Origin: Zancudomyces culisetae HAW-14-8
Taxonomy: Eukaryota; Fungi; Kickxellomycota
Reading direction: 5' to 3'
Length of the DNA: 64,000 bases
NCBI GenBank assembly: GCA_052426225.1
Contig: JBNJNM010000011.1
Span: forward strand, 4,278,001 to 4,342,000
Within the stretch, counting starts at the first letter, position 1. Every line of letters begins with the position of its first letter. Shown here piece after piece: positions 9,016 through 38,510 of the stretch. The translations under genes were made by a program, and so were the position numbers. The notes under the pieces are model-generated. The model was not told the DNA's origin, did not search any database, and saw only the letters and a list, made by a program, of their open reading frames with translations.

Positions 9016-10293
9016 CTACGGAAGTTGCTCCCATTTTATTTGCGGTTTGTTGTTTTTCTCTAGATACTCATTGGCAAGCTTGAAATGTTTGCAGGTAAAA
9101 AACCCATTGTGGGCAGATAGCGGGCTTGGGTGTACGGTCTTCAAAACCAAATGTTTCTTCAAATTGATGATTCCCTGTGCCTTCTTCTGTGCATAGGCTC
9201 CCCATAACAAAAACACAACATTACTAAGCTTGTCGCTGATTGCCCTGATCACTGCATCAGTGAAGATTTCCCATCCCTTTCCCGAATGCGAGTTTGCCTT
9301 GTGCGCTTCGACAGTCAGTGTGGCATTTAGCAACAGTACGCCCTGCTTTGACCACCCTTCGAGATATCCATGTTGTGGTAGCGTTTTAAATTCATCCGGA
9401 TAGTCCGTTTGTAGCGTTTTATACATGTTTCTTAGTGATGGTGGGATTGCTACACCCTTGCGTACACTGAAAGCCAGACCATGTGCTTGGTTTACGTTAT
9501 GATACGGATCTATACAGTGTTTACGACCTGTTAAATTAGCATTACAGTACTAGACTAGATATTTATTTAAATCAGCGTTAACAACCTTGTCCTATTATTA
9601 CAACTTTGATATCGTTAAACTTTGTGAGTCTTGACCATGTATATACGTCGCTTTCTGGTGGGTATATGGTCTTTTTGGCATTTTTTTCCTGTTCCAAGAA
9701 GGTTTTCAACTATATAATATTTTCGAAATTGAATAAATGGTTGCATCTGTATGCTGCGAATGACATTATGTACCAAAATCATATTTATAAATACATGTTT
9801 GCATTCAAACTCATAAGTATGTTAACTCAGTATATAGTAAACAAGTGTGTTAACATACTTTTATAAAATATGGCTTTTTAAACTCATCGTGAAGGATCTT
9901 GTACCAATCCTCGCCCATGGTTCGCCCCTCTAAGGATCCATCATTATCTTGAGAGATCTTTTCCTTATCCTCGCTCTTAGTCTAATGCAGAATTCTTTGT
10001 TAAGCATATTTTCTCTTTTCATTATTACTATTATTGCTATTATTAAATAACACGAGTGTAAAATCTTGCTAAGCCATCAAATCCTGAAGGCTCTGTTTGG
10101 CTTTCCCAGTACAATTATACACAAATTTTCAAAATTCAGGTAATCAGGTAAATTAACAAAAACATACCTGTGTGCTTAATTTGGTCGTCTTATTTTTTGG
10201 TTCATCCTTTTTCTGAAAAAAGTTGGTTAAGGCCGCAGTTCTTTTAGAGCCCGTAGAAACTGACGATGCGCTAGTCTTTTCTGAAAGAGTCAT
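9016..10293 (-). CDS. UNG1: Uracil-DNA glycosylase; exons 10293-10168, 9981-9859, 9709-9586, 9509-9016
   Basis: The spliced product restores the catalytic VIIGQDPYH motif and has [14 protein letters not shown] and HPSPLS. An N-terminal PIP-box-like ALTNFF is present. All introns are GT-AG and in phase. Confidence 0.95.
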
Positions 10294-10900
10294 TTCTCGC
10301 TATTTATTATGAGTACGCCTTACGCAGATACACAGGTGCAAAATATATTTATTCTTATAACACTATCTTCCTTTAGATATGGAATAGTATTTACATAGAT
10401 CGTTTTCGGCTGCTTTTACTCTTTCCTAAGCAAATAATTTAAAATCTTGGATTTTTGTCATTTTGAAAATGATCACGAATTAGCAATTAGTAGCATCTTA
10501 TTTGCGAAAAATGTTTATTATTTACCCCGTATCGCATTGTTGATTTGCAGTTTATAGTTTTGCACCACACTAGGCGCATAAAACAATACACATGATATAA
10601 TATGATACGCTAACAGGTTAAATCAAGGTAAATCAGAGTATTTTCTGGGTGTACTTATCACTTAACTCTCAATTAGAAAGAAAAGGATAGTAATAGCCTA
10701 TTCTTGCTTTGTCTAATTATTCAAAAACTGTTCACTACCATTTCTAGAACAGAGGTGTTTATTTGTATTTGTGTATACAGCATAATGCACATCACTACAA
10801 GAGATCTAAAAACTGATATAAAATTACTCTTGGAAAAGCCGCGTTCTTCCAGTGGAATTGATTTAAATTACTAATTATACAACCCTGTTTCCTGAAGCAA

Positions 10901-11995
10901 TCAAGATTTTAACTTTGAATATTTTACCAGCAGATCTATTAGATCAAGTCGTACCTTTATATCCTTTTCAAGTTCGACATCAAAAGATTTTCCAATCTTC
11001 CACTGCTCACAAAACGATACAATGTCTATTGGGTTAATTGAGCTTGAATTGATCTCGATACGGTGTTTATTAAAATCACCAAGTGAAGATACTTTGATCT
11101 TTCCTTTTTCGCTGTCTTCTAGACTGCTAATAGTGACAGCACCATCTGATCCAAACTCCAAATAGCTCAAAGTAACATTCCCAGCGACTGAGATGGGGCC
11201 AGACTCGGTTGATAACGGATAAACATGATGTATTAATCTCAAATATCCGAGATACTCGTGCACAAAAAAAGCAAATGTCTGTGTAGACCAATCCTTGATG
11301 GTTTCTGCATTTAGGCCTGAAACGCCGAGATATCCTTCATTCTTGCTCAGCTTCCCACTACCGTTATTCCCAGGAGGATTTACTTTTGACTTTTTACCTG
11401 CTTCAGTGGTAGAGCCGCCTTTGTTTCCAGCCAGACCTCCTGTTGCTTTTTTACTTTTGCTTTTCTTTTTAGATTTGGAATGCACTTCTGTGGGTTCACA
11501 ATTAGAATCTCTCAGCTTTTTTAGCGACTTGGGCTCCTCAGTTTGCTTTACATTGGTGTTTATATTCATTTTCTTAAAATCTTCGTTCATACCATTTACA
11601 TCTTCGCAATTTAATACGCTTTTCAGCTTAAACGCACTTTCGACGCACAAACCCAGCTTGTCTTCAAGGGCTTGATTCATTTTCACCAAAATTCGCTCTA
11701 TTTCTGCATCTTGGGCACTACCCAGAGCTTTCAAGTAATCCAAACTTAAAAAGTGTTTTTCACCGACCAATTCGGTGTTCGTATTTATATATATCCCATC
11801 CTTCCTAGATATCTCCTTCAGCCATTTTGAATCGCGCCTCAATTCATTGATGCTTTCTTGGGTTTGAGTTTTTTGTTCAAGTAAATTTAGTAGCGAATCA
11901 CAAAGTTTGTCGGTCTCAACTTTGAAAGAACTAAACACTTCGATCTGTGTGTTAATACTGCGTAGTGCCCGCACACGGTCCTGGATCGAGTTCAT
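10901..11995 (-). CDS. Hypothetical protein (helical/coiled-coil N-terminus, Lys-rich linker, globular C-terminus)
   Basis: 364-aa ATG-initiated single-exon ORF in AT-rich DNA. No family recognised. Confidence 0.7.
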   Translation of the reverse strand: MNSIQDRVRALRSINTQIEVFSSFKVETDKLCDSLLNLLEQKTQTQESINELRRDSKWLKEISRKDGIYINTNTELVGEKHFLSLDYLKALGSAQDAEIERILVKMNQALEDKLGLCVESAFKLKSVLNCEDVNGMNEDFKKMNINTNVKQTEEPKSLKKLRDSNCEPTEVHSKSKKKSKSKKATGGLAGNKGGSTTEAGKKSKVNPPGNNGSGKLSKNEGYLGVSGLNAETIKDWSTQTFAFFVHEYLGYLRLIHHVYPLSTESGPISVAGNVTLSYLEFGSDGAVTISSLEDSEKGKIKVSSLGDFNKHRIEINSSSINPIDIVSFCEQWKIGKSFDVELEKDIKVRLDLIDLLVKYSKLKS

Positions 11996-12821
11996 TTTTC
12001 AAAATACACTTCTCAGCTTCCTATCACGTTTTTACCTTTCGGTTTTGTAACTTTGCAACTGGATAAAAAATCTAGCGAAATGGTTGTACTGGATCAATTA
12101 AAGAAAATTTTTTAAAATAAGCAGATGGATTTCATTTCAAATCTGTATGTAGCCAAGCGCTGGCCGATTTTAGCAAAAATTTGAAATTTCAATTGCAATG
12201 GACGCGCGCTTTCTCTATTTTTCCGTGCAATTTCATTATATTTCAATGTTTTTGCCTTGCCCACAGTGTAAATCTACTAACACCACTTTAGCACACATTT
12301 TCTATACCCGCATGTATTATCTTATTCAAAGCCGCGCAGGTAATCAGGCATACTACTGAAACATCACCAGCGACAATCGCGGTTTATTTTTTCCCTTTTA
12401 TATTTATTTTATACTCATTCTTACTCTACATTTGCATTTTTTTTTCATTTCCAAGATTTTTCTGTATTACAAGTTTAGATGCTAAGCTCAAAAGATTGAA
12501 TTGTTCCGAAACACCAAGATTCGCAGCAATTACACGAAAAATTGAATTTGAAAAAAAAGGCCCAATGTAGATGCAAATTGGTTTTTAATCTGGTTATTTA
12601 TTGGCTCGCAACGCAACTTTCCAAAGAAAAAAAGGACATACTTTAGCTTATTTAATGAAAAAGGAGTTGACTGCGGTAAATAAATGTGCGATTCTAAAAG
12701 GCTTCTGATGCAGTTAAAATTGACACTAAATTTAAAAATATAGGAAACATTGTATTGTAAGCTTATAAAAGCAATTTAATGGATGCATATTCTTGTACTT
12801 TAAATCGCAAACACTTAAAGA

Positions 12822-14249
12822 ATGGTCGTCTCTACACGAAGTAGGGGAATACGTGATATCAGCAGTGGTAGGTTAACCCTCTTTTTGTTCAACATACTTA
12901 GTTCCATGTTTGTAGTATTTCATATGTTGTTGAAAATGACCAATTTCATAATAATAGTCGAAAATGATAAGCCTAATAAGAATCCCAAACCAACCAAAGT
13001 TATTAAAAGGTAAGAATCGAACTCTTTTTTTATTTTTATTTTCTCATGATATTTTATCAACTTTTATACCACTTCATTTTGCAAATAAACTGAATACAAA
13101 ATATAGACAAAATGCAACAGTCGATAAAACGAAAAAAGAAAAAAACACAGATAATACTGCTAGGGCTGCACAAAAGAGATCTCCTGGTCGGAAGAGAAAA
13201 GAGAACTCCCAGCACTCATCAGAAGTTGGTAGCTTTGAAGTCGAAAGCCCTCGGAAAGAGCTGGTCGTAAAAAGAAACAGAACAAGTGATTTCTTTATGA
13301 CAATCGATGATAGCAAATTTTCAAAGCTTCTGTCTGAAAAAGCGGTTGATGACGATATATTGAATTTGGCTGAATTTGACACATTTGGCAGCGACTTGAA
13401 CTTTTCTGGCGAAGAGGGTAGCGGAACAAGTATACTAGAAAAGGGTTCAGAAAATTCGCTATTTGCAGGAGAACTTTCGGAAGAAAGGTTGGCTAGGTTT
13501 GAGCAAGGGTTGGAGGATCATATCAGTAGCTCTCTTTCTCAGTCATTTACAGGTAATTCTAAAATGCCCTCCATACTGAATGTGAGCCGCAAGTTTGCCA
13601 ACCCCTTGGCTTTTTTGAGGCTTCATAGTCAAAAGCGTTTACTTTTAATGATCATAATATGACACCATCTTTTTTTATAAAAAAAATAGATGATAAGAGA
13701 GCAGGTAGTGGTAGAAAAGTGAAGTCATCTCTACCGAAGGAGGCAAATGCAATTACAGAAACGGAGCTGGCATTTTCTGAGGCAGAATTTCCTACTGCAG
13801 CATCCCCTGTTAGTATAAACATTAAACCTACAGCAATATCAACACCTGTATCTAATCAATCATCAGACCTATCGTCAGATTTTGATTTAGATATGTTTTT
13901 AGGCCCTAAAACCAAGAGCACTTCCTCACCTCTTGGTCAGATCAAGTGGCTACTGGATCCAGGTGTTGGCAATGCTTTGCCGTTTTCATTAAAAGGCAAG
14001 AAACCGCAAAAAGTGTATTCGGCGAAAAAAGCAGCTAGAACCACAAAGCCCGCTATAGTTATCGATAGCACACCGGAAAATAAGCTCAGAGGAACGAACA
14101 AGGGTAAAAACACCAGGTTTACATCAGCAAACACATCATCTCTCGGTAATAAAAGCAGAAAAGTGGCTACGTCTAAAAAAACCGCCACAAAGGCAATACC
14201 AAAGACAACAAAAAGAGCCACAAGTAAAAGAGCCGGGGCCTCTAAATGA
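12822..14249 (+). CDS. Hypothetical basic, largely disordered protein, probably nuclear; 4 exons (~12822-12867, 12958-13009, 13107-13552, 13690-14249)
   Basis: Three GT-AG introns join the three overlapping track ORFs with consistent phases. Starts MVVSTRSR; has an SPGRKRK NLS-like motif and a Lys/Thr/Ala-rich tail. Confidence 0.65.
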
Positions 14250-34319: not shown

Positions 34320-34734
34320 TAACCTGATGCACAAATGAGGGCTGGTCACAAATCAGGTTAGATGGTTGAGGCAAATCGAGCAGTGATTGTGGAATGAGCT
34401 TTTGTAATTTTAAAAAACAGAATCACAGATTTCGAACACAAACACACAGAGCTAACGCAAAACAAAAAAAAGGGGGAAAGGTGAAGAAGGAAAAGCCAGT
34501 TGGCTGGTCAAAGACTAGTGCCGAAAATAACCAAATCAGGTTATGGTACAATGTGATCCACAAACAGTGCACTAGTTGAGTTATCTTGAAAGCAGCTGTC
34601 TTATTACCATATTCCATAATGTTTGATTTTTTAGCTTGCTATAAGAAAAAAAGGAAGCAATGGGAAAAGTATAAATTCCCTTTGTGTTGCTCTATTTCTT
34701 CAAACTGCAAAACATCCTTTCCTTTTTTTGTGGC
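34320..34734 (+). promoter_or_regulatory. Putative upstream regulatory region of the GH3 gene: cluster of CRCAAA (Ndt80/MSE-like) sites and repeated ATCAGGTTA
   Basis: CRCAAA at 34330, 34347, 34437, 34456, 34559 (+) and 34681, 34727 (-). ATCAGGTTA at 34320 (-), 34352 and 34535. GGCTGGTCA occurs twice. Confidence 0.4.
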
Positions 34735-34861: not shown

Positions 34862-36772
34862 ATGAAATACTCCATTATTCTTTCATCGCTTACAGCTCTT
34901 ATGATGAGTGCCGGCGCTGCGCCATCTAATCGCCCCAAGTGTGGAAAGGTTGATACTGTTGACATCGACAAGCTCATCAGTGAAATGACACTTGAACAGA
35001 AGATCGCCCAGAGACTTTTGCCTGACATGCGTAACTGGAACTATGGCGGTTGCAGCAACAAAGCTGCCAACGTAGAAGTAATGAATGACGAGCTTGCAGC
35101 CTCCATCTCAAAATACTCATTCGGTGGTATGGTTTTGTTTGCTGAAAACGTTGTTAACGCCGAGAACGCAACCAGACTCATTGATGCCATGCAAAAAGCC
35201 AACGCTGTCAACAGCAAGATCCCACTCTTTGTTGGTGTAGATCAGGAAGGTGGTATCGTTACCCGTCTCGGTAACGGTACTATGTTGCCAGGAAACATGG
35301 CTGTTGGTGCCACTGGTGACCCCAACAACGCATACTTGAGTGGAGCAATCACAGGTAGTGAGCTCAAAGCCATCGGTGCCAACATTAACTTTGCACCTGA
35401 TGCCGATGTTAACATCAACTACCAAAACCCTGTAATTGGTGTCCGTTCATTCGGATCTCACGCAGATCTTGTAGCCAAGAACGCCGTCCAGTACCAAAGA
35501 GGAGTAAAATCTGCCGGCTGTATCAGCTGTGGTAAGCACTTCCCAGGTCACGGTGATACTGCAACCGACTCCCACTTTGGTCTCCCACTTGTAAACAAGA
35601 CACTAGAGCAAATCCAAAATGTAGAACTCGTTCCATTCAAGGCCTTGATTGCAAACGACGTTGACATGATCATGACTGCTCACATCCAATACCCAGCTTT
35701 GGACGACACAACCATTCCAAACATCGTCGATGGATCTCCCCTAATTGTTCCAGCCACTCTATCCAAGAAAATCATGACTGACTTTTTGAGAGGTACTCTT
35801 GGCTTCAAGGGTGTCAGTATTACCGATGCCATGAACATGGAAGCTATCATCAGTTATGTCGGTAACGTAGATGCTACAGCCAGAGCCATCAGAGCTGGTG
35901 TTGATGTTATCATCATGCCAGCCCTTGTCCGTTGTGTTGCAAACTTCACCCTCTACGACGATGTTATTAACAAGGTTAAAAAGGATATCGCAGATAAGCT
36001 TTACTCCGAGGATGAGCTCGACACCTCAATCAAGCGTATCCTGACCCTCAAGAAGAAGTATAACCTGTTTGCCCCAGTAACCACCACCATCGAAAAACGC
36101 ATTGAAATCGCAAACGCAACATTGAGCGATCCAAAACACAAAGAAATTGAAAGAAACATGGCACGCGACGCAATCACCCTCCTAAAGAACGACCCAACTT
36201 ACGGAATCCCATTCAAGACTGATGAGACATCAAAGGTCGCAGTCTTTATGCCTGACGCCACTCAAATTGCCTCAGCTGTCCGCACAATGCAATCACTCGG
36301 TGTACGCGCCAACTTTACAACCTTCCCATTCACAAACACCTTGTTCAACGATACTATCAAGGCTATGATTGACGCTTCTACTCACGTAGTTATTGGATCC
36401 CTCGTAACCAAGAACACACCAGCAATTGATGGTGGTGACATCTTTATTGACACTGGAAAAATCGGATCATGGGCATACTCCTTCCCTGCTGGTGTTTCTG
36501 ATTACGCAAAGACTACCAAGAAGCCAATTGCCGTCATTTCTCTAAGAAACCCATACGACTCTGCAAACTTCGAGCGCACCACTGGTGCAGTTCTTTGTGC
36601 TTATGGATTTAAGGGATATACCAATGGTGTCTTTGGTCAACCTAACCTTCCAGCTGCTATTTCCACCGTATTTGGACACAGCAAGCCAAAGGGTAGACTT
36701 CCAGTTGATATTCCATCTGTATTCGACAACTCAACTATCCTCTACCCATTCGGTTTTGGTCTTAGTCTTTAA
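34862..36772 (+). CDS. nagZ: Secreted GH3 beta-N-acetylglucosaminidase, two-domain NagZ type
   Basis: Signal peptide MKYSIILSSLTALMMSAGA; DQEGGIVTRL; NPVIGVRSF; NagZ signature KHFPGHGDTATDSH (Asp-His dyad); nucleophile motif ITDAMNM; C-terminal GH3_C domain ending PKGRLPVDIP...YPFGFGL. Intronless. Confidence 0.95.
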   Translation: MKYSIILSSLTALMMSAGAAPSNRPKCGKVDTVDIDKLISEMTLEQKIAQRLLPDMRNWNYGGCSNKAANVEVMNDELAASISKYSFGGMVLFAENVVNAENATRLIDAMQKANAVNSKIPLFVGVDQEGGIVTRLGNGTMLPGNMAVGATGDPNNAYLSGAITGSELKAIGANINFAPDADVNINYQNPVIGVRSFGSHADLVAKNAVQYQRGVKSAGCISCGKHFPGHGDTATDSHFGLPLVNKTLEQIQNVELVPFKALIANDVDMIMTAHIQYPALDDTTIPNIVDGSPLIVPATLSKKIMTDFLRGTLGFKGVSITDAMNMEAIISYVGNVDATARAIRAGVDVIIMPALVRCVANFTLYDDVINKVKKDIADKLYSEDELDTSIKRILTLKKKYNLFAPVTTTIEKRIEIANATLSDPKHKEIERNMARDAITLLKNDPTYGIPFKTDETSKVAVFMPDATQIASAVRTMQSLGVRANFTTFPFTNTLFNDTIKAMIDASTHVVIGSLVTKNTPAIDGGDIFIDTGKIGSWAYSFPAGVSDYAKTTKKPIAVISLRNPYDSANFERTTGAVLCAYGFKGYTNGVFGQPNLPAAISTVFGHSKPKGRLPVDIPSVFDNSTILYPFGFGLSL

Positions 36773-37205: not shown

Positions 37206-38510
37206 TTATGATGTATCTGGAGTGACAACACATCCTTTTACACGGCTATCCTCTGCAGCGAATGTATACATATGTGACAACAATGACTCGTAGGCGCCAG
37301 ACTTGTTGAGCGAAGGATCATTGTATATCAAAGAGTCGATGAAGCTTGAAATAATTCCATAATCACCGCCACCATGACCAAAGAGGTCGGAATACACCTT
37401 GTATTGTTCCATTTCATGTGGATGCACCACCGTTTTTTTGCAGGTTGCAAAGTCAAATACAGTGATTTCACCAATACCATCAGTTATAAGCTCACCTTTA
37501 GAGCCGTAAATTTTAGTTTTACGGATACAGAGATCTTCTGTAAATGCTATCATTGTGAGAGTTGCAGTTTTATTGCCTTCAAACTCAAATGTGACAACCT
37601 GGTTATCACAAACGTTGTTATCACACTCATACACGCAGCGACCATATGGTCCGGATGTAATTGCTTTGGTGATGTTTTCAATATCAATAACATTTGTGAT
37701 GGCGTTCATAGGAAAACCGCTTTCGCCTCTCTTTGTAGGCTCCAAATAAATCGTTTTGGCAGAATAGGGACAGTTTGACTCATGGGCACATTCCATACAG
37801 GTTTTTGCATCGCCAGCCTCCATAGGCTTTTTGTCCTTCTTGAAATGCGACAAATGACCAAATGATGAAACCTTGGTGCATTTTGCACCACCCATAAACC
37901 AATTGATCAAGTCCACATCATGGATACACTTGGTCATCAAAGAAAAAGATGTCTCCTCCTCTTTTGCCCAGTTTCCACGTACAAAAGAGTGGGAGAAGTG
38001 TGTATTCCCTATAGCCTCAAGATGTTGTACAGAGTAAATCTCCCCAAGCACGCCCGAATTTACAAGTTTCATAACTTCCGAGTAGATAGGTGTATAGCGC
38101 ATAACATGGCATACAGCAAGTGTAATTCCATTATCAACCGTCGCTTGATATATATCTTTACAGTCCTGTAGGCTGGTGGCCATCGGCTTCTCAAGAAGAA
38201 TATTATATTTTTTGTTGGCCATGGCAACAGCAATATTGCAGTGGGTCTGATCAAGAGTAGAAACTATAACGGCATCGGCAAACTTGTCCATCCCCACAAG
38301 TTCATCCACCGATGTGAGTGTGTGTTCTGCTTGTATATTGTGCTTCTTTGCCATATTTTCACGGCGCACAGGATCTGGATCTACAACACCAACAACTCTC
38401 ATCTTTTCTGGTCGCGACATGGCGTATGTAGCGTATATATTTCCACGCATCCCCGCACCAATCACAATCACAGTAATTGGTCCTGAAACAGTGACATCAG
38501 CATTCGTCAT
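37206..38510 (-). CDS. Gfo/Idh/MocA NAD(P)-dependent oxidoreductase, YteT-like
   Basis: Rossmann motif VIVIGAGMRG, LLEKPMA, CHVMRY, HSFVRGNW, KCIHDVD, GPYGRCVYECDNNVCD and GHGGGD. Intronless. Confidence 0.9.
   Translation of the reverse strand: MTNADVTVSGPITVIVIGAGMRGNIYATYAMSRPEKMRVVGVVDPDPVRRENMAKKHNIQAEHTLTSVDELVGMDKFADAVIVSTLDQTHCNIAVAMANKKYNILLEKPMATSLQDCKDIYQATVDNGITLAVCHVMRYTPIYSEVMKLVNSGVLGEIYSVQHLEAIGNTHFSHSFVRGNWAKEEETSFSLMTKCIHDVDLINWFMGGAKCTKVSSFGHLSHFKKDKKPMEAGDAKTCMECAHESNCPYSAKTIYLEPTKRGESGFPMNAITNVIDIENITKAITSGPYGRCVYECDNNVCDNQVVTFEFEGNKTATLTMIAFTEDLCIRKTKIYGSKGELITDGIGEITVFDFATCKKTVVHPHEMEQYKVYSDLFGHGGGDYGIISSFIDSLIYNDPSLNKSGAYESLLSHMYTFAAEDSRVKGCVVTPDTS

Follow-up and report, generated by a model that had tools for sequence, protein, structure and literature searches.

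In Bacillus subtilis, peptidoglycan is degraded from its non-reducing end by NagZ, AmiE and NamZ acting in turn, with NamZ working on MurNAc ends only and needing NagZ to proceed, and a nagZ mutant accumulates GlcNAc-anhMurNAc (PMC8054146). NagZ (YbbD; structures 3bmx and 4gyj) is encoded there in a murQ-murR-murP-amiE-nagZ-namZ operon. The NagZ of B. licheniformis hydrolyses chitobiose completely (PMC7996098). In fungi, the Nag3/Ngs1 enzymes (RmNag of R. miehei, 4zm6; NAG3 of T. reesei; MaNAG3/4 of M. anisopliae) share a NagZ-like motif and the beta-N-acetylglucosaminidase class; they are cytosolic, often GNAT-fused, and lie in GlcNAc clusters. Elsewhere among eukaryotes, anaerobic ciliates are predicted to catabolise peptidoglycan amino sugars using bacterial genes, namely laterally acquired NamZ, anmK, murQ, pbp4b and nagB, and the paper lists no NagZ (PMC13198582).

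Here, we analyzed a NagZ-type gene of Zancudomyces culisetae, a member of the Harpellales, for which the one transfer highlighted in the papers covered here is that of a host ubiquitin gene. Z. culisetae lives in the guts of mosquito and black-fly larvae, and the diet of Harpellales in larval guts is poorly known. Like the B. subtilis system, Z. culisetae combines a two-domain fold, catalytic dyad, nucleophile and predicted export signal, and its genome encodes NamZ and MurQ as well. In contrast to it, the organism is a eukaryote without peptidoglycan of its own, and the genes are scattered, with neither AmiE nor a PTS MurP. Nag3/Ngs1 enzymes are apparently absent from the genome. While the ciliates phagocytose bacteria, Z. 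culisetae is an osmotrophic fungus whose enzymes would act outside the cell in the proposal made below.

The gene and its predicted product

The window, i.e. the whole stretch of 64,000 nucleotides analyzed here, spans 4.28-4.34 Mb on a contig of more than 4.3 Mb, in an assembly of 27 Mb and 25 contigs. Its positions 34862..36772 (+) hold a single unbroken frame of 636 aa, an allele of OMH85678.1/OMH81348.1 annotated in public databases as beta-hexosaminidase. Its domains and alignments identify the product as a GH3 beta-N-acetylglucosaminidase with two domains, resembling NagZ (YbbD) of Bacillus in type. Profile matches delimit the GH3 N-terminal catalytic barrel (PF00933, aa 43-396, 34988..36049, +; E 3e-85) and the GH3 C-terminal domain (PF01915, aa 438-635, 36173..36766, +). 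The active site is intact: the NagZ signature KH(F/I)PG(H/L)GX4D(S/T)H, as defined in PMC7996098, is present as KHFPGHGDTATDSH (aa 225-238, 35534..35575, +) and includes the Asp236-His238 dyad, and the catalytic nucleophile Asp322 (35825..35827, +) aligns with B. subtilis Asp318, pairing with the Asn of the D318N mutant 4gyj.

Comparison with known structures gave a consistent picture. B. subtilis NagZ (3bmx) matches the protein with 532 bits across aa 5-635, and the segments that a preceding sequence-only reading had named as typical of Bacillus NagZ are indeed present and align with it; the fungal GH3-GNAT enzyme RmNag (4zm6) reaches 201 bits. The AlphaFold model used, which represents the allele of another strain with three differing aa (mean pLDDT 88), superimposes on 4gyj/3bmx with a TM score of 0.91, an rmsd of 1.8-1.9 Å and 41-42% identity, with the GlcNAc-MurNAc complex of B. 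subtilis NagZ as best structural match, versus a TM score of 0.73 and 26% identity for 4zm6. A domain profile search found no GNAT domain, and the score against NCBIfam NF003740, the equivalog of single-domain proteobacterial NagZ, was 174.7 bits at a cut-off of 207, which places the protein outside that subfamily.

Several features suggest that the enzyme became a secreted fungal glycoprotein. A probable signal peptide (aa 1-19, 34862..34918, +) has a short n-region, begins with MK followed by a hydrophobic core up to about aa 19, and has no lipobox; it coincides in part with a low-confidence helix (aa 2-17) in the AlphaFold model. A leader of this type is kept across the Harpellales copies, in line with the signal peptide claimed previously, and it does not have the Lys-rich n-region seen in the Bacillaceae matches. 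The protein has six Cys, of which C64 and C358 are conserved in Harpellales only, and eight N-glycosylation sequons, versus means of 0.5 and 2.6, respectively, in the 112 top bacterial matches. In two-fold pyrimidine boxes, 66% of the NagZ codons end in C versus 22-47% in 19 other ORFs of the window, so the codon bias unlike that of the neighbours, noted before, is real. ATA is not used for Ile, and AAG reaches 71%. As the same bias occurs in the nagB, GH20 and NGT1-like genes of the genome, it represents the codon set of highly expressed fungal genes rather than a trace of the bacterial past. Between strains, 15 synonymous and 3 non-synonymous codon differences were counted (17 and 5 in a second comparison), and the gene is under purifying selection.

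Chromosomal residence, origin and history in Harpellales

Bacterial contamination or misassembly has nothing in its favor beyond the bacterial type of the protein, and its probability is negligible. Besides the length of the contig, a short-read assembly of another strain speaks against it: both haplotypes show the same neighbours, 98.9% identical across 18 kb, and the copies of five other Harpellales species also lie among fungal genes; the fungal high-expression codons argue in the same direction. The gene is not contamination, and the earlier description of the flanking contig as fungal thus extends to two assemblies and six species with copies. Vertical inheritance, i.e. descent from a fungal Nag3-type GH3 with loss of the GNAT domain and a mere resemblance to Bacillus NagZ, is very improbable as well. 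Fungi do possess NagZ-like GH3s (PMC4950302, PMC6415606), and our trees, which took in Harpellales, Bacillaceae and proteobacterial sequences, left fungal Nag3 out, so this explanation was judged from scores. Against the 201 bits of RmNag and its low identity and TM score stand at least 150 clusters (at 50% identity) scoring at least 338 bits, and their identified members outside Harpellales are all bacterial or unnamed metagenomic. In addition, no Kickxellales protein occurs among the top matches, although Kickxellales proteomes are in the searched database. Altogether, an ancient bacterial origin of the Harpellales NagZ is almost certain.

The gene converges with a Gfo/Idh/MocA (YteT-like) oxidoreductase gene (37206..38510, -), whose best matches are in Harpellales, Kickxellales and animals. 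Being eukaryotic and inherited vertically, this gene marks the locus as fungal, and its matches rule out a co-transfer with NagZ. A CAP59 mannosyltransferase, identified by its domain profile, is a further neighbour. A conserved NagZ-oxidoreductase-GT69 cluster is not supported, as these genes are not linked in S. megazygosporum, F. boomerangus, S. culicis, S. angustum or Martensiomyces. In Linderina pennispora, the YteT-like oxidoreductase adjoins a UNC-93/NGT1-like transporter (locus 10001-14249), while in Z. culisetae it adjoins NagZ; these neighbourhoods may hint at an amino-sugar role of the oxidoreductase, but three other species do not share the arrangement. Neighbouring genes of 971, 434 and 467 aa consist of single open frames as well, so the absence of introns in NagZ is uninformative. 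Of the initial description as an intronless 636-aa two-domain GH3, frame and domains were borne out, and intron loss was dropped as transfer evidence.

The best matches of the protein belong to Smittium megazygosporum, S. culicis, S. mucronatum, S. angustum and Furculomyces boomerangus (48-71% identity), followed by Bacillaceae with 43-47% identity; full-length Bacilli matches, C-terminal domain and export signal included, show 44-47% over 94-100% of the length. At E 1e-60, the subfamily was detected in 66/401 genomes of Bacillota versus 3/401 of Gammaproteobacteria. All trees recovered the Harpellales copies as one fully supported clade, surrounded by bacterial sequences and not nested in Bacillaceae. 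In the free trees, a proteobacterial clade is the sister group (SH-aLRT 86-93, UFBoot 98 under LG+G4). The AU test does not reject the grouping of Harpellales with Bacillaceae (p-AU 0.17), and a site-mixture model favors it over the quick free tree by 5.2 log units (p-AU 0.60). As donor, Bacillaceae and the proteobacterial clade are not separated by the trees. The long GH3 hexosaminidases of Pseudoalteromonas, Vibrio, Burkholderia, Sodalis and Serratia, the sister group in several trees, belong to the same long two-domain subfamily, but show 30-37% identity and do not have the C-domain segment aa 515-538 (36404..36475, +) common to Harpellales and Bacillaceae. This segment contains 5/6 of the columns exclusive to these two groups; three exclusive columns are shared with proteobacteria. 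Identity in the C-domain is 41% to Bacillaceae versus 28% to all other groups. A Bacilli-related donor seems somewhat more likely. The placement among Firmicutes put forward in the sequence-only reading therefore stands by similarity, while nesting inside Bacillaceae was not observed in the trees. Long GH3 genes were also seen on Providencia and Enterobacter plasmids, beside a DUF1343/NamZ gene or beside GH18 and an amidase; the module is mobile among bacteria.

The gene resides in the genome, is restricted to one fungal lineage and, in the trees of Harpellales and bacterial proteins, is nested among bacterial sequences. Its carriers include members of the non-Smittium, true Smittium and Parasmittium groups; a published estimate puts the divergence of these groups at 270 Ma (PMC5954228). 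Since the copies of these six species form one clade, the transfer predates this split (about 270 Ma). A recent or species-specific transfer is ruled out by the Harpellales-wide distribution and the 48-71% identity between copies. In the trees, the closest companions of the Z. culisetae gene are the S. megazygosporum gene and one of the paralogues of S. angustum/F. boomerangus, which suggests that duplications predate the species split; in S. angustum and F. boomerangus, the family has expanded to about six types. One of these, S. angustum PWA03244.1 (F. boomerangus cluster mate: PVU87655.1), is likely a pseudoenzyme, as it retains neither the dyad His nor the nucleophile, lacks further residues of sugar binding and has no signal peptide. 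These data support a single entry of a bacterial YbbD-type NagZ into the ancestor of the sampled Harpellales, followed by duplication. The proposed bacterium-to-fungus transfer with domestication and chromosomal residence was thus upheld, but not as an event of one species: it is Harpellales-wide, old and duplicated. We found no paper calling the gene a transfer or describing the route in fungi, and nothing relevant on Harpellales and peptidoglycan or on MurQ/AnmK in fungi; the NagZ accessions do not occur in the part of the xenolog tables of Ciach et al. covered here.

Partner genes and proposed peptidoglycan salvage

A profile search of the Z. culisetae genome detected NagZ as the only GH3 match. 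NamZ, AnmK and MurQ genes are assigned here by family score and position, and partner genes lie on other chromosomes than NagZ. Four NamZ/GH171 matches exceed the cut-off in the profile search (218-238 bits, 45-49% identity to a Bacillus-type NamZ): C15:19531-20670 and C15:55102-56241, which score identically, C21:1645188-1646330, and C21:2614339-2615517, where an internal TAA indicates an intron or a broken copy. MurQ scores above the curated cut-off of TIGR00274 and is fused to a BadF-type kinase in a single frame of 658 aa; an AnmK-family gene lies at a distance of 1.8 kb (together C9:1326219-1330872); a second AnmK-family copy lies 40 kb off (C9:1370137-1371294). Fungal AnmK-family proteins include levoglucosan kinases, a point against the route proposed below. 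nagB and an intron-containing nagA form a divergent pair (C7:44080-49810), a remnant GlcNAc cluster with no hexokinase, transporter or GH3 nearby. UNC-93/NGT1-like transporters gave four matches, and a GH20 hexosaminidase with a signal-like N-terminus is present that would cover chitobiose. The queries used for MurNAc-L-Ala amidases (AmiE etc.; PF00144, PF01510, PF01520) and for GH24, GH25, GH73, SLT and NlpC/P60 found no match in the genome, and the GH19 matches are nearer to chitinases than to lysozymes. NagZ, NamZ and MurQ hence co-occur, and the AmiE part of the recycling set was not found. Lacking a detectable amidase or endo-lytic enzyme, the fungus alone could not dismantle intact sacculi, and host or bacterial enzymes would have to act first.

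Lysozymes and PGRP amidases are provided by the insect gut, and turnover of their walls makes bacteria release fragments. We propose that these host enzymes or bacterial autolysins would supply fragments from which NagZ in the larval gut removes terminal beta-1,4-GlcNAc; its substrates would comprise GlcNAc-MurNAc, GlcNAc-anhydroMurNAc and longer glycans, with peptide present or absent. Fungal NamZ would remove the exposed peptide-free MurNAc, so that both enzymes alternate. GlcNAc, MurNAc and anhydroMurNAc would then be imported and phosphorylated by the BadF-type kinase domain and the AnmK-family kinase, MurQ would yield GlcNAc-6-P, and NagA and NagB would convert this into fructose-6-P and ammonia. 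Since MurNAc, a sugar of bacteria, is the sole substrate of NamZ and MurQ, peptidoglycan is the best-supported target of this NagZ, and its salvage is probably the main role of the enzyme. The family, the intact active site, chromosomal residence, the single Harpellales origin and the partner genes are supported directly; secretion, substrate, cooperation with NamZ, transport and the supply of fragments by host or bacteria are what we infer.

In the wider proposal, which we favor somewhat, Harpellales eat bacterial walls: an acquired secreted NagZ-NamZ pair, downstream of insect lysozymes and amidases, would feed MurNAc catabolism, its acquisition would have accompanied the move into insect guts, and it may also clear immune-active muropeptides. 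The transfer of a bacterial glycosidase into a gut fungus is, alone, an ordinary kind of event; here, a secreted-type peptidoglycan exo-glycosidase would have been kept for about 270 million years with MurNAc-specific partners, in a culturable species. If true, fungi would join ciliates as muramic-acid-catabolising eukaryotes, and in mosquito and black-fly larvae, gut bacteria and host receptors would face a fungal competitor for muropeptides.

One alternative shares the bacterial origin but sees the main job in finishing the breakdown of chitin from the peritrophic matrix, the hindgut cuticle or the fungus' own wall, replacing a lost Nag3 and overlapping with GH20. As NagZ is the sole GH3 found, the usual fungal Nag3 appears to be lost, and the genome encodes nine GH18 and five GH19 matches, the latter closest to chitinases. 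The proteobacterial relatives include chitinolytic genera, and one of their genes adjoins a GH18. The chitobiose cleavage by B. licheniformis NagZ (PMC7996098) makes chitobiose a plausible second substrate. Nevertheless, a secreted-type GH20 is already present, and a chitin role leaves the retention of the MurNAc-specific NamZ and MurQ unexplained, which makes this explanation unlikely. The choice between peptidoglycan and chitin, left open by the sequence-only reading, thus tips to peptidoglycan with NamZ, the MurQ-kinase, the AnmK family and the separate GH20, with chitobiose as a possible second substrate. Muropeptide monomers trigger insect PGRP-IMD signalling, and another explanation could be that NagZ mainly trims GlcNAc-anhMurNAc-peptide elicitors to dampen gut immunity, or weakens bacteria, with nutrition being secondary. 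A secreted-type enzyme in a gut commensal and the expansion to about six types in S. angustum and F. boomerangus, one of them catalytically dead, would suit this function. However, NagZ as an exo-enzyme does not cause lysis, the queries used yielded no endo-lytic enzymes, and the intracellular MurQ, NagA and NagB point to catabolism, so we consider it improbable.

Putative regulation and further observations

In Trichoderma, the Ndt80 family controls GlcNAc genes (PMC4950302), and the Z. culisetae genome has one Ndt80 gene. Upstream of NagZ, seven CRCAAA (Ndt80-type) hexamers, taken without regard to strand, are locally enriched at 34330..34732 (130-530 nt upstream; scan p 0.005) and represent putative sites. 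Such sites number 1-4 per 1.5 kb at nagA, nagB, GH20 and the transporter, and 1-2 upstream of three Smittium NagZ copies. As the cluster is missing upstream of these Smittium copies, nagA, nagB and GH20, control by Ndt80, as in a RON1/Ndt80 GlcNAc regulon, remains a lead. No promoter motif common to NagZ and nagA/nagB/GH20 was found.

The start ATG has an A at -3, and a TATAAA lies 190 nt upstream of it (34670..34675, +) as a match to the consensus only. The 11-mer AAATCAGGTTA occurs twice upstream of NagZ (34350-34360 and 34533-34543 of the window). Elsewhere in the genome, five identically scoring GH18 matches with 1154-aa frames are spaced at about 26 kb (C24:8973-108443), an array that reflects either segmental repetition on a large scale or an error of the assembly.
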